A stretch of DNA of 64,000 nucleotides from Octopus bimaculoides (GCF_001194135.2 NC_068999.1:3327799-3391798); one strand, 5' to 3'; shown: positions 18,401-60,400, counted from the stretch's first letter. Notes: generated from the sequence alone by a model not told the origin. Made by a program: numbers and translations.

Positions 18401-21400
18401 GCAAGTGTTAATGTAGGGTGGTGGGGTGTTGGTGTGTGGAGCCTGGTTGACTATGATCGAATGAACCCCGGATAAAAGTCATTCCAGTCATGTCCTTCTC
18501 ATCTTTCAGTTTGTCTATGACCACACACACACACACACACACACACACACACACACACACACACACACACACACACACACACACACACACACACACACAC
18601 AGAGAGTCAAACTTTCCATTGCTTTAACATATTAATATCGATTGTATCTTGTTGTTTGTATTGATCACTAGATATCAGAGTGTGAGGATATCATAATACA
18701 TGATACACCCTTTCTCCATAGCGTATTTAATTTCTTAATCATTACCAGTTATCTGCAATAAATACTTAACAGTTGTTATAAACCACTTATTACCCGTGTT
18801 ACTAACCACTGTCTTTATTTTCTATCTTCTTTACAGACTTGTTTCAGAAAATCCAGACCCTTTACCCATTGCAGCCAACCTACCTGCCGGTTACCTGTCA
18901 CATGATATGGTAGCAAGTGGCAAGGTGAGTCTTCTCAACATTATTTTCTATAATTGACTTTGAGACAATCAGACTTTGTATGTTTGTGCGATGGAAGGAA
19001 ATAAAAGACTTGTTCTGGTATTCCAAAATAATCTTTCTTACTCTAGGCTCAAAGCTCAAAATTTTGGGGGAGAGGGCCAGTCGATTAGATTGACTCCAGT
19101 ATGCAACTGGTACTTAATTTATCAACCCCAAAAGGATGAAAGGCATAGTCGACCTCGGCGGAATTTGAACTCAGAACGTAACGGCAGATGAAGTACCAAT
19201 AAACATTTTGCCCGGCGTGCTAACGTTTCTGCCAGCTCGCCGCCTTGATAATAATGGACTGGTTAAATGTGTGAATGTGCGTGGCCTAGTGGTTAGGGTG
19301 TTGCATTCACAATTATGAGATTGTGGTTTCAATTCCCAGATAAGCTGTGCATTGTGTTCTTGAGCAAAACACTTCATTTCGCATTGCTCCAGTCCACTCA
19401 GCTACAAATGGGTCACCCCTGCAATAGATTGGCATACATGGGTAAGATGGTGAGTGACTCAGGAGAATCACCCAAACAGAGGTCTAGTTAGCCACATTTT
19501 GTATTCAGCAATCAAAAGGATGAACATCTTACGCATCATCTTTATTTCTCTCATTGCAGGTAATGTGTCCTGAAATAAAATGGGTCGATGGCAAAAAAGA
19601 ATTACTGAAGGTCAATCTCAGATTGAAATCTACAATTTACACAAAGGTAAGCTGCATTACTTGTTCTTTAATCCCAAGTTAGCCTTAATCTGACAGATTT
19701 ATATTCACAGATATTCCACCCATGATCTTCCAGCCTTTTAGCTTGATATCTAAATAAAAGATGTCGATCACCAAGGTAATGTTTTCTTGTGATTTTGTAC
19801 TGTAAACAGTCGGTAAAATGTTGGACTCCTCACTACACCACCATGGGTTCCAACCCCACAAGACCTCTTGTAGAGTATTCTCTGACAATACATGTTATGC
19901 TACTTTCCCGTTGTTATCTTGCTGATAAAAGGTTCCATTTCTACTCGAGGGTGTCAGAGATGTCTGTGTAATGTGTTTTCCTTTATAAAACTGAAATCTT
20001 ATGGCTTTGATAGACATACCACTGAAATACAAAACTGAGATTTTAATAATAATAATAATAATAATAATAATAATGATAATCTTTCTGTTTGTAGGATCAA
20101 CATTTGTACAATTTCTTTGTACATTGCCAAAAACTGGAAAATAACTTCTCCCCAACTGTAGAAAGCGAAACAACTAATAAATTGAAGGTAAAAACTAGTG
20201 TCTTTGGTTCCTGTCGATAAATCATTTCTATGTCTTCATTATGTAGGATTTTTCTGCTGAACATGTTAGACTTTAAACCTCATTAATGCTATCAATATTG
20301 CAATGATATGACAGAATGTTAAGCTTGCATGACACATTCTCAGTTTGGTCAGTCAACTTACAGTGATTGTTGCTTTCTCTTTTCTAGTATCTCCAAGTAT
20401 TCTTCTTGTCGTCTTCTTCTCAATCTTCTCTTCTTTCTCCTTGTCTTCTCATTATTATTATTATTGCTTCTGCTATTGGTATTGTTGTTGTTATTCAGAA
20501 ACAATTACAAAGTTCTAAAAATAAAAGCCGTTATTATTATTATTATTATTATTATTATTATTTATTTATTTATTTATTTATTTATTTATAGTGTTGTTTG
20601 TTGAAACGTGGTGATTAAATGATAAAACTGTATGTTAGAAGGTTTCAACAATGCAGTTGGAAATTTAAACATCAATAAGATGAAAAACAAACATATTGAA
20701 ATGTTACCGTAAAAACATTTAATAGTCCTGATGTTTCAAGCATAAAAACTTGTTTATGAAGGGTTTTAAGAGAACTACAGGGAGGCAGAGAAAGAAAGAG
20801 AGAGAGAGAGAGTAGATGAATGAATGTCTCTTTGTATTGATATCTTGGCATTCATCAATGTGCTAACTGAAATTGCATCATGTAACAAATCCAGTGCAGT
20901 AAGTGCACCAGGTGTCAGGTCAGCAGCACAATTTGGTCCTTACACATTGAGAATACCTTCCACACACACACACACACACACACACACACACGTGTGTGTG
21001 CATAAGACATTGATAATTAAAGGAATATTAACAAGGAAAAGGTGGTCACCATTTAAGTCATAAATTATAACATTGGTAACCTGTGGACCAACGAAGCCAT
21101 CCTGATTAAGAAAACCAACCAACCATTTATATGCACCATGAATTGAATGAAGTGACTGTTATTGTTACTTCTGTGAGACGCAATACTGAACCCTGATCTC
21201 TACTTGTGCATTTGTTACAGCAGCTGCTTCATATTTGATGACCCATCAAACACAAATTACCCTCCCAGTCTCCATATCCCAACACACCTAGTTTGAATTT
21301 TTCTCTCACAAGGCCACATTTCCGACCTAGAAGGTTATTCATTTTCTCTCTCTAATTAGTTCACTTCGACCTCCATAAAGCAGTTTTAATACCAGAATAT

Positions 21401-57400: not shown

Positions 57401-60400
57401 TTTTATCTAATATTTTCCATTATTCTTCACTGAACGGAATGAACCAAGAAATCCTGAAATTCTCTTCTGCTTTGTTCTGTCTTCAGAATCTTCTTTTCTG
57501 TTTTTTTTATTATTATTATTATTATTATTATTATTATTATTATTATTATTATTCTGTCTGCAATGGTGCCATGTTGACTCAGTATCTTACACACTGAAGA
57601 ATTTCTTTCATCGTGAAACATCAATCACCACTAGAATGGTTCAGGTGCCCCAGACTTGCACTCTATTGAAAACCATGAAATATTTGCAAAGAATTTTGTA
57701 TGGGTGTGGTTGTGGGGGAAGGGCTAGCTTTGTATATATGTGTGTGTGTGTGTGTGTTTTTGGTAACGGTGTTAGAAAAGAAATACAATCAATCCAGATA
57801 CGTCCACCCAGGTATATATATAATCAGCTTTCAACTTGATGCTGCTCCAGGTATCCATGTGATGACGTCCTATTCTTTCGTGTTGTTTTAGGGTCAGTTT
57901 CTCTTCTCACCTGCATTTGGTCTGCACATTTTTTCTCTTAGCTGCACCCCTTAATGATTCTAACTTTCTGGTGTTGTTCGGATTCACTGGACACCAGAGA
58001 TGTCAGTTTATATCCAGCTGTAGTGGACACCGGAGACTTGAGTTGTGTCCACAAAATCAATAGGAACAAATCTCGAATTGTTGTTTTAAAGTATTTTCTG
58101 AAAAACTGTGAAATGGAAATATTTTCTCGTTATGTCTGTCTTGTCTAAGTCTCGCTAATTAACGCAATTATTAATTGAAATGACCATAGAGTAGCAGCTA
58201 CTTTACACTGACCACTTTACTAACTTTTTTAGTCCCTGCTCAAGCCGTAGAAACCTTAGTCTTAAGCCATGAACTAACCTGACCCAGTGGCATGGTCACT
58301 GTGTGTTTGTATGAGGTCGGTCGGGGTCCACGTTTGTTGTACACCAAATTATATTAATTAACTGATTTGATTAATTTCTACCATGTCCTGGAACTCATTG
58401 GTGGAGGCATTAGCATGGCAGACTCTGCTTTTTATCAGACTGAACACATTGTCCTTTTGGGGCTTGACCAATACCAAGCTTGACCAATATCAAGCTGTCA
58501 TCAATAACTGATCAAAATCGGGATTATCATCCATGATCAATCAATATCCGGTCATTGTCAGTAAGTGACCATTATTAAACTGACCCTTCAACAGAACTTG
58601 AGCAATACTGATCCCTGTTGTTACTTGATCAGTTCCTAGTTTGTTGTAAAGGATTGACCAGTGTGTCTTTGGTCTCCCTCAAGTGATGACCAATCACATG
58701 TGTATGTATATATGGATATCAATTAATGACTGACAAAACAACATTAGTTTACATAATCACTTTCATCAGCTTAATGGCTCTGAGGAAGCTATCGAATGTT
58801 GCATAGACAACCAACTCTTAGTGCACTGTTTTTTTTATAGCAGAAACAGCTGTAAGCTAATGAAGGTGATTATGTAACTTCTGTTCTTTTGTCTTTCATT
58901 AATTGATATTACACTCTGTACCCGCCAAATGCTTTACTCTAAAGCATAATGGTATTGATTTCTAACAACAGGTTATTAGTATCGCTAAGCCTAAGCAAAA
59001 CCATAATAATAATAATCATGTATGTAAACATATTACTTACCGACATTGACAACTGTTTTATCATGTCCGAGTGGTCTTTGAAACTGATGCAAAACTGTTC
59101 GTTTTGACGTACTTACCATGAAATATTCTAACTTGTAATTCTGTGTTTGCCAACAGGAACCTACCCACAAGGCTGTGCTGCATTTCACATGATCTCCCCC
59201 AACATACAGACAGAAGAATCCTCTATAAAAGATGATTCCGGAATGCAGGATGTTCACTACACTGATGTAAGTACGCACACACAGACACACACACACACAC
59301 ACACACACACACACACACACATGCAGACAGGCTGTTTGTTTATGGCCCCTATATTAACTATGCTGGACCCAATTCACAGCATATACTTTTGGGTCCCTCA
59401 ACTTTGGTTAAAGGGAATGATCTATAGGGGAAATGTGATGAACAAGATACAAGTGACTGAGTCTTTCTTTTTTTGTCATTATTATTATTATTATTAAAGT
59501 GGCAAGGTGGCAGAATCATTAGCACATCAGGCGAAGTGCTTGGCGGCATTTTGTCTGTCTTTACGTTTTGAGTTCAAATTCCACCGAGGTCAGCTTTGCA
59601 TTTCATCCTTTCGGGGTCGATAAATTAAGTACCAGTGAAACACTGGGGGTCGATGTAATTGACTTGTCCCCTCCCCACAAATTTCAGGCTTTGTGCCCTT
59701 TACTAGAAAGGTTTATTAGTACAATTGGTGCTAATAACCATAATCCTTTCTGCTCGTCTGTGTTAGGTGTAGTAGGAGGGAGAGGATTGACTGTTTGTCG
59801 ATGAAGAAATACACATCATTCCATGTTTGTGTCTTGTGTTCCTGCAGAGTACATTGATTGAGAACCTGGAACAAGCTGCCAGAATCATAGAACAAGCTGA
59901 ACGTTATGAAGTTTTAGGGGACATTTACAAACTCATTATTCCAATGTATGAAGTGGCCAGAGACTTTGAGGTAAGTTATCATCATCACCACCACCACCAT
60001 CATCACCATCACCATCATCATCACCACCATCATCATTATCATCATAATCATCATCATATTTATTATCTCTGACTATACCACCACCACCACCACCACCATC
60101 AACAACATGGCCACCAACACTACCGCCGCTATCACTCAAAAACAATCATCACCACCATCACAGCAATTCTATCCTATTTTCCCATCCTCCCCTCTTTAAA
60201 AGATAACCCCTATTTTAGTCATTTGTTGTGAAATAATTCCCTTTTTTTTAACCAATTCTTAGATGCCTACACCCCCACCTCAACTCCTACCCCTCTCCCT
60301 CATTACCAATCCCAAGATGTCTCCCTCTCTCTCTCTCTCTCTTTACCAATTCTTAAATGCCCCCCCCCCCCTCTCTTCTCCCTAATCTCTTATCCTTTGA

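Follow-up and report, generated by a model that had tools for sequence, protein, structure and literature searches.

One question raised by the longest introns of a gene is whether they hide small exons that gene models have passed over. It arises in a stretch of 64,000 nucleotides (nt) from Octopus bimaculoides (NC_068999.1:3327799-3391798; hereafter the window, to which all octopus positions refer), which encodes on its + strand a DOCK-D (DOCK9/10/11, zizimin-type) guanine nucleotide exchange factor (GEF); members of this family are exchange factors for Cdc42. A sequence-only reading of the window had claimed that introns 18, 24 and 38 conceal frame-preserving microexons and cassette exons missed by gene models, and had cited in support the short AG..GT units, some accompanied by TGC motifs, that these introns contain. 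The claim of hidden cassettes stands, with two 15-nt exons matched in oysters and a moderately supported one of 54 nt, whereas the units and motifs cited in its favor do not support it. Very probably, introns 24 and 38 contain genuine 15-nt cassette microexons that date from the common ancestor of cephalopods and bivalves, and intron 18 contains a probable 54-nt cassette. The three exons are as follows, with j18, j24 and j38 denoting the junctions interrupted by introns 18, 24 and 38.

33588..33602, + strand: j24 microexon ATGTCCAATTGGAAG, 15 nt; inclusion reads ...KNYK-DVQLE-DLKHDY; acceptor score 9.4, donor score 10.1.

55165..55179, + strand: j38 microexon GGAAGATGAAGCCGA, 15 nt; inclusion reads ...YLRRRG-KMKPR-TYPQGC; acceptor score 6.4, donor score 9.5.

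22383..22436, + strand: probable 54-nt cassette at j18, open and phase-compatible, adding 18 residues; acceptor score -0.4, donor score 14.2; TGC at -12.

The scores come from donor and acceptor matrices built from 31 junctions of the octopus DOCK9-like gene itself, which were defined from human, insect, annelid and oyster homologs. In the three long introns, a donor score >=9 is reached only five times, and of the AG..GT units of 3-60 nt in these 21.9 kb of intron, exactly two combine a donor >=9 with an acceptor >=6. Both are 15 nt long, in frame and open, and the minus strand and the remaining 28 introns contain no such pair. The donor of the j38 microexon is the sole donor >=9 in intron 38, and the splice sites of the j24 microexon score at the level of real exons, its acceptor exceeding the constitutive median. 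The AG-exclusion zones of the two acceptors, 32 nt at j24 and 98 nt at j38 (only 1.6% of intronic AGs have a zone this long), resemble those of real acceptors (median 42) and not those of random AGs (median 11). Taken alone, this step gives candidates, not proof. In a tblastn search with 142 homologs, the long introns gave no match at E<=1e-3 that would mark a hidden conserved exon; exons this short are beyond the reach of that route.

The evidence that carries the two microexons is their match to optional exons of oysters, which was found after they had been discovered by their splice sites. Isoforms X2, X24 and X26 of the eastern oyster, Crassostrea virginica (XP_078311751.1, XP_078311777.1 and XP_078311779.1) differ by the segments IKSFK[DIKLE]DLKCDY at j24 and YLKKRG[KLKSR]CFPQGC at j38, and the octopus peptides DVQLE and KMKPR have the same phase, length and flanking residues as oyster DIKLE and KLKSR. 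When all open 15-nt windows of each intron, with or without splice sites, were ranked by BLOSUM62 score, the DVQLE unit came 1/8345 in intron 24 against oyster DIKLED (score 25) and the KMKPR unit 1/2758 in intron 38 against oyster GKLKSR (score 22); the next-best AG..GT units score 8 and 4, respectively, against the oyster peptides. In the genome of the oyster Saccostrea cucullata, the j24 exon is a discrete exon of 15 nt (cag/ACATCAAATTAGAAG/gtaac, L001:31961-31975) that shares 11/15 nt with the octopus unit. Both octopus units thus lie at the intron position, and in the phase, of an exon that is optional in the orthologous gene, with a sequence similarity to it beyond chance, and both are of microexon size (<=27 nt and a multiple of 3), a class to which the 54-nt unit does not belong.

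At the DNA level, two 15-nt microexons are therewith established: the j24 and j38 exons are shown to have exon-grade splice signals, and their position, phase, length and peptide are conserved in optional exons of oysters, across a cephalopod-bivalve split that is Cambrian in age. By analogy with the oysters, these two exons and the one at j18 would be spliced in octopus, and alternatively so; sequences diagnostic of their inclusion are KNYKDVQLEDLKHDY, RRRGKMKPRTYPQGC and NKLKPENGRV. In three UniProt octopus models from 2015, exon 38 is joined directly to exon 39 and the j38 microexon is absent from all of them, which hints at the existence of the skipped form. Since the long introns hide two 15-nt exons and a probable one of 54 nt, matching optional exons at these positions in oysters and a sea slug (Elysia), octopus very likely produces variants of the protein that are missing from the 2015 models.

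The 54-nt unit in intron 18 is probably a third cassette exon, with moderate support. Its donor is the strongest in the three introns and stronger than any real donor of the gene, with a chance expectation of ~0.07. The unit has the length and phase of the optional 54-nt segment found at j18 in oysters (LNKLK[LDKPTMDLEITFLSNSTK]SLHAVD in C. virginica), which in Saccostrea is a discrete 54-nt genomic exon, optional among the four isoforms of that species (XP_062616229-32). The j18 segment of Elysia, MENGG...ALLNGVK, has its start (ENG) and its end (LN-A/G-I/V-K) in common with the peptide encoded by 22383-22436; in an end-anchored comparison with the Elysia segment, a test devised after the match had been seen, the octopus unit ranks 1/2263 open windows, and the last seven residues of its peptide place it in the top 3 against Mya. 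It could also be that a 621-N gap in intron 18 hides an alternative exon.

The observations from which the sequence-only reading had started fared differently. AG..GT units of 9-54 nt in the phase of the host intron, for which no coordinates had been given, do exist within each long intron, with 165, 325 and 62 frame-preserving, stop-free units in introns 18, 24 and 38; dinucleotide shuffles give 160±15, 298±22 and 58±9, so the counts hold no signal beyond chance, and they are similar in the wrong phases and on the opposite strand. The TGC motif, proposed as a mark of regulated units, is uninformative at ~13 occurrences per kb of intron; by our own rough estimate, ~1/3 of random 40-nt windows would hold one by chance. 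Units and motifs being at chance frequency, the original observation is real but carries no information. The heuristic that regulated exons tend to sit in long introns did hold: six sites vary among the three C. virginica isoforms by our count, and three of the six correspond to the three longest octopus introns, an overlap with a chance of C(6,3)/C(45,3) ~0.0014 (a hand calculation assuming ~45 junctions). Exons of this kind cannot be found by counting in-phase AG..GT units or TGC, but they can be found by gene-specific splice-site scoring together with comparison of isoforms from distant relatives.

Several points weigh against the three cassettes as interpreted here. The thresholds of >=9 for donors and >=6 for acceptors were chosen after the scores had been seen, and preset thresholds (the 10th percentile of real sites) give 0, 1 and 1 units in introns 18, 24 and 38 against 0.6, 0.9 and 0.2 expected by chance. 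The intron flanks of the j24 microexon are unconserved between octopus and oyster. The Elysia and Mya models are without the j24 microexon, and that of Elysia is also without the j38 microexon; these missing exons could reflect isoform choice or lineage loss. For the 54-nt unit, the j18 cassettes of oyster, Owenia and Tubulanus have no similarity to intron 18 or to 22383-22436, and the Elysia match is that of a post hoc test. The isoforms of oysters, crinoid and other species come from gene models in databases, of which many were predicted automatically, and the homolog searches for cephalopod proteins or transcripts returned the three UniProt fragments of 2015 alone. Two further searches were negative: for oyster j38, the 357 nt of retained intron in a Logan contig (L002) contain no microexon, and 150 representatives at 50% identity yielded no further species with a K.K.R or D..LE insert.

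If the units were chance pseudo-exons of long AT-rich introns, where AG..GT units in frame run into the hundreds and a few would match the splice sites well, the bulk counts would equal those of shuffles and the number of strong units at preset thresholds would be that expected by chance, as is the case for both; even at the post hoc thresholds, shuffles give P(>=2 units) = 0.027 only. Against this, each 15-nt unit is the unique best match to its oyster peptide, with a joint chance of the order of 1e-7. The peptide match is independent of the splice-site ranking, and chance is therefore largely refuted for 33588-33602 and 55165-55179, though not for 22383-22436; as an account of the units, it is highly improbable. 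We also give little credence to a loss of splicing in octopus that would have left the sequences behind as remnants of ancestral molluscan exons. The absence of the j38 exon from the 2015 models and the restriction of cephalopod matches to three UniProt fragments would agree with it, yet an unused 15-mer would have lost its open frame, its residues (3/5 identical and 2/5 similar), its AG and GT, its consensus-grade flanks and its AG-exclusion zone across the cephalopod-bivalve split.

A different objection grants that the microexons are real and holds that they are constitutive in octopus, missed by the sequence-only reading and the 2015 models alike, with no regulated program involved. Gene predictors routinely miss short exons, and the j24 splice sites (9.4 and 10.1) are as strong as constitutive ones. 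This is nonetheless unlikely, as both forms are annotated at all three junctions in oysters, at j18 in Owenia and at j24 in Antedon, the three UniProt octopus models join exon 38 directly to exon 39, and the 98-nt AG-exclusion zone and downstream GCAUG pair of the j38 exon are typical of regulated exons. Optional cassettes of common ancestry with those of bivalves thus remain the preferred reading for j24 and j38.

What might govern their inclusion is a separate question, for which the following motifs are relevant.

55194..55214, + strand: a pair of GCATG motifs downstream of the donor of the j38 microexon, GCATG at +15 and TGCATG at +31; putative Rbfox-type enhancer sites.

55142..55144, + strand: TGC at -23 to -21 from the j38 3' splice site, just 5' of the tract cttccttttc; indistinguishable from chance.

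Rbfox proteins promote inclusion from (U)GCAUG motifs in the downstream intron. A (U)GCAUG within ~100 nt downstream is found for the j38 microexon only, against an intron-wide GCATG density of 1.15 per kb, and there is no GCAUG within 100 nt of the j24 microexon or of the 54-nt unit. The j38 microexon is in this respect like Rbfox-enhanced cassette exons, as known here from motifs alone, and the GCAUG pair is a candidate for Rbfox-type enhancement. Downstream of the j24 microexon, three TGC lie within 21 nt at 33629-33653 (+27, +36 and +47), two of them as CTGCATC repeats that do not match GCAUG.

The sequence-only reading had favored another regulator, the neural SRRM3/4 (eMIC-domain) program, in which exons are activated through UGC beside the 3' splice site. 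Among the features listed for eMIC exons are a UGC close to the 3' splice site, an AG-exclusion zone of great length and tracts rich in UCUC (PMC8797185). The 15-nt size, the preservation of frame and a GTPase regulator as host gene fit this program, as do the UGC motifs at -11/-8 of the Saccostrea j24 exon (a UGCUGC between the pyrimidine tract and the AG), at -23 of the octopus j38 exon and at -12 of the 54-nt unit, and the long AG-exclusion zone at j38. The octopus j24 microexon, however, has no UGC within 67 nt upstream, the nearest being at -68, and its 3' splice site is strong and not weak; TGC at 13 per kb is too frequent to inform, and eMIC and microexon programs are reported to be almost completely rewired between phyla (PMC8797185). 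Membership of these exons in the eMIC program is accordingly a tentative proposition, and neural inclusion driven by SRRM3/4 through UGC in octopus is weakly suggested, that is, possible but not indicated.

The consequences for the protein can be described more directly. Inclusion or skipping of the cassettes keeps the reading frame and adds 5 (j24), 5 (j38) or 18 (j18) residues. The j38 site lies inside DHR-2 lobe A, which Pfam places at residues 170-320 of the UniProt protein A0A0L8FZY9 (P0001), and in the AlphaFold model of that protein (predicted local distance difference test, pLDDT, 86) it falls in a coil, 224-229, right after helix 203-223; in the alignment with a DOCK9 crystal construct, a 5-residue gap falls exactly here. 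The model therefore shows the j38 insert as falling in a surface loop. The j24 and j18 inserts may likewise occupy loop positions, DVQLE being placed in the helical region between DHR-1 and DHR-2. Inclusion of the j38 microexon changes RRRG to RRRGKMKPR, a polybasic stretch that is conserved in oyster (KKRGKLKSR), and the polybasic insert may affect binding of membranes or partners.

A sequence of events can be proposed on this basis. The j24 and j38 microexons very probably descend from exons of the cephalopod-bivalve ancestor; octopus would skip or include each cassette with the frame kept; an Rbfox-type factor would enhance inclusion of the j38 microexon through the two downstream GCAUG motifs; and the resulting isoforms would tune the localization or regulation of the GEF, not its catalysis. 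More speculatively, j18, j24 and j38 could be remnants of an ancient DOCK-D module, whose use in octopus would be tissue-specific, probably neuronal, and under Rbfox and/or Srrm234-eMIC control. If so, the module would switch a polybasic loop of DHR-2 lobe A on and off, and thereby retune membrane targeting or dimer regulation of the Cdc42 GEF.

The identity of the host gene and the boundaries of its introns underlie these comparisons. The UniProt protein A0A0L8FZY9, also from O. bimaculoides, is 100% identical over 13 consecutive exons at 49031-63738. Pfam finds DOCK-C2 (E 1e-48) and lobes A (E 1e-53), B (3e-29) and C (2e-15) of DHR-2, and a PH domain, DOCK-C2 (DHR-1) and the three DHR-2 lobes follow one another in the order that defines DOCK-D. 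The PH-domain exons align with an oyster protein, the best named matches are DOCK9-like, and 13477-31684, when spliced, is a single open frame of 711 codons. Two other UniProt models lack a whole conserved exon each, P0144 the 138-nt exon 48995-49132 and P0143 the 114-nt exon 50886-50999; both omissions preserve the frame and may be genuine exon skipping or artefacts of the models. The three long introns and their flanking exons, in window numbering, are these.

20095..20187, + strand: exon 18, ending ...ETTNKLK with donor AAG/GTAAAA; placed by tblastn to oyster and human homologs and by a continuous spliced open reading frame (ORF).

20188..26855, + strand: intron 18, phase 0; 6668 nt including a 621-N gap at 24362-24982.

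26856..26971, + strand: exon 19, starting SLHAVE in the homolog-spanning junction ...NKLK/SLHAVE.

31576..31684, + strand: exon 24; its last residues are ...LIKNYK, followed by a split-codon G.

31685..42101, + strand: intron 24, phase 1; 10417 nt including a 10-N gap at 39157-39166.

42102..42119, + strand: start of exon 25 (DLKHDY), cut by the gap 42120-42639.

52742..52799, + strand: exon 38, ending ...SEYLRRR plus a split-codon G and encoding the last part of a long helix in lobe A of DHR-2; mapped exactly by P0001.

52800..59156, + strand: intron 38, phase 1; 6357 nt including a 924-N gap at 55699-56622.

59157..59266, + strand: exon 39, starting with completion of the split-codon G; junction ...RRRG/TYPQGC.

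At the boundaries that the sequence-only reading had given them, the three introns begin and end with the canonical GT..AG, and their phases of 0, 1 and 1 were derived from the sequence and verified by splicing and translating. Their unusual length is also borne out: they are the top three of the 31 defined introns, of which the median is 543 nt and the next longest 1607, with lengths that contain estimated gaps of 621 N (intron 18), 10 N (intron 24) and 924 N (intron 38). The DOCK-D proteins of human, insects, annelids and oyster run colinearly with the exons on either side across ...NKLK/SLHAVE, ...KNYK/DLKHDY and ...RRRG/TYPQGC, so that no constitutive exon is missing within the introns. 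A fourth long intron, of ~4.3 kb (7080-11411, after ...LYPDMQ), lies outside the finding, and the three oyster isoforms are identical at its junction. The three cassettes are similarly spaced from the upstream donor, at 2195 (22383), 1903 (33588) and 2365 nt (55165), with most of each intron (4.0-8.5 kb) downstream.

Assembly gaps do not touch the cassettes, there being no N within 300 nt of 22383-22436, 33588-33602 or 55165-55179, and exon order and strand match the oyster protein on both sides of every gap. The gap 42120-42639 cuts exon 25 after 18 nt (DLKHDY) and, by comparison with Lamellibrachia, human and oyster, hides ~50 conserved codons and an intron; exon 26 resumes at 42673, after a run of 28 T. 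This gap breaks the gene model and leaves the three long introns unaffected, and the fragmentary state of the 2015 gene models may result from it. The gaps 43497-43619 and 46141-46345 are located in a poorly conserved linker. The 924-N gap of intron 38 lies directly 3' of a (TA)80 microsatellite at 55539-55698 and is absent from the supplied gap list, and intron 22 (29227-29799) holds a tandem array of ~41 copies of the 14-nt unit TGACATTTCCACCA, which spans a 10-N gap at 29643-29652.

As to how the introns grew long, repeats shared within the window were rejected as the cause, self-comparison finding interspersed repeats over 2-9% of the long introns. A short interspersed element with the translated motif ...ASQPHG.GF...W.LGQ... 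is present in several introns (25083-25349, 41273-41491, 53398-53529, 62864-63151 and others). Minus-strand ORFs at 22881-23174 in intron 18 and 38365-38886 in intron 24 resemble remnants of Tc1/mariner-type transposases (...FSDESSF...VWR...); intronic ORFs have no Pfam match at E<=0.01, with HTH_Tnp_Tc3_2 (E 0.025) as the sole sub-threshold match. Part of the intron length may stem from DNA transposons that inserted long ago. Searches of the introns for RNA genes gave 0 matches in Rfam and 0 in a tRNA scan.

The same three junctions recur in other animals. Among named orthologs, supplied by an exhaustive search of representative proteins and by cluster look-ups, extra or optional segments occur at j18 in oysters, Mya, Elysia, the annelid Owenia (optional, 27 residues) and the nemertean Tubulanus. 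At j24, besides the oyster exon, the crinoid Antedon (16 isoforms) has at least 4 different cassettes, and Tubulanus is longer by 18 residues. At j38, Branchiostoma belcheri has 13 extra residues where B. floridae has none, and many DOCK10 entries of vertebrates, among them the human protein that was crystallized, have 33. Bilaterian orthologs thus show j18, j24 and j38 as hot spots for optional segments. In the Lamellibrachia satsuma models P0140 and P0239, the unit HEFYVPLCLPIMTRKVKNYK-GQELQRSRT... is repeated two to four times at j24, which may represent tandem exon duplication or an artefact of assembly or annotation.

A DOCK-D module of the kind proposed above may be at least as old as the mollusc ancestor, and possibly as old as the bilaterian ancestor, because optional segments are found at the same three positions in orthologs from annelid, nemertean, crinoid, amphioxus and vertebrate. 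Either repeatedly or since ancient times, such segments have been carried across Bilateria at these three probable loop positions of DOCK-D proteins, one of which lies in the catalytic region of DHR-2. For annotation, the significance is that the 2015 octopus models lack at least one such exon and break the gene at the gap that hides part of exon 25. Given the nearly complete rewiring of microexon programs reported between phyla (PMC8797185), the j24 and j38 exons are concrete, testable examples of deep conservation within Mollusca.

Among known systems, the closest is the orthologous gene of oysters, which has the same exon boundaries and, at the same junctions and in the same phases, optional exons of 15 nt at j24, 15 nt at j38 and 54 nt at j18. 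It differs in that its host introns are far shorter, the j24 microexon lying 283 nt past the donor against 1903 nt in octopus. The j24 exon of Saccostrea has UGCUGC next to its 3' splice site and that of octopus has none, and the oyster j18 peptide is unrelated to the octopus 54-nt candidate. Oysters have further cassettes (KYYNY, GDCKGRKKGSKE and others), counterparts of which are absent from the short octopus introns.

Vertebrate DOCK10 also has an extra segment exactly at the position of octopus intron 38 (...EYLKRKG/...FSMGWPAF), with which some entries are annotated and others not; the DOCK10 structures 6TKZ and 8I5F contain the insert, which the DOCK9 construct 2WM9 lacks. Unlike the octopus insert, that of DOCK10 has 33 residues, and its sequence is unrelated to KMKPR. 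Vertebrate DOCK9 presumably has an insert in DHR-2 lobe A as well, of ~24 residues. The position shared by octopus and DOCK10 would be compatible with common origin or with repeated gain. Microexons have been described in other DOCK genes: a 6-nt microexon is listed for human DOCK9 (PMC8627023), and an 18-nt microexon of fly spg and of vertebrate DOCK3/4 in DHR-2 is described as convergent (bioRxiv 10.64898/2026.09.05.749416). The spg and DOCK3/4 exons belong to another DOCK subfamily. Neural specificity is documented for these microexons and is no more than a possibility for those of octopus; like the octopus j38 microexon, they are very short, preserve the frame and lie inside the catalytic DHR-2 region.

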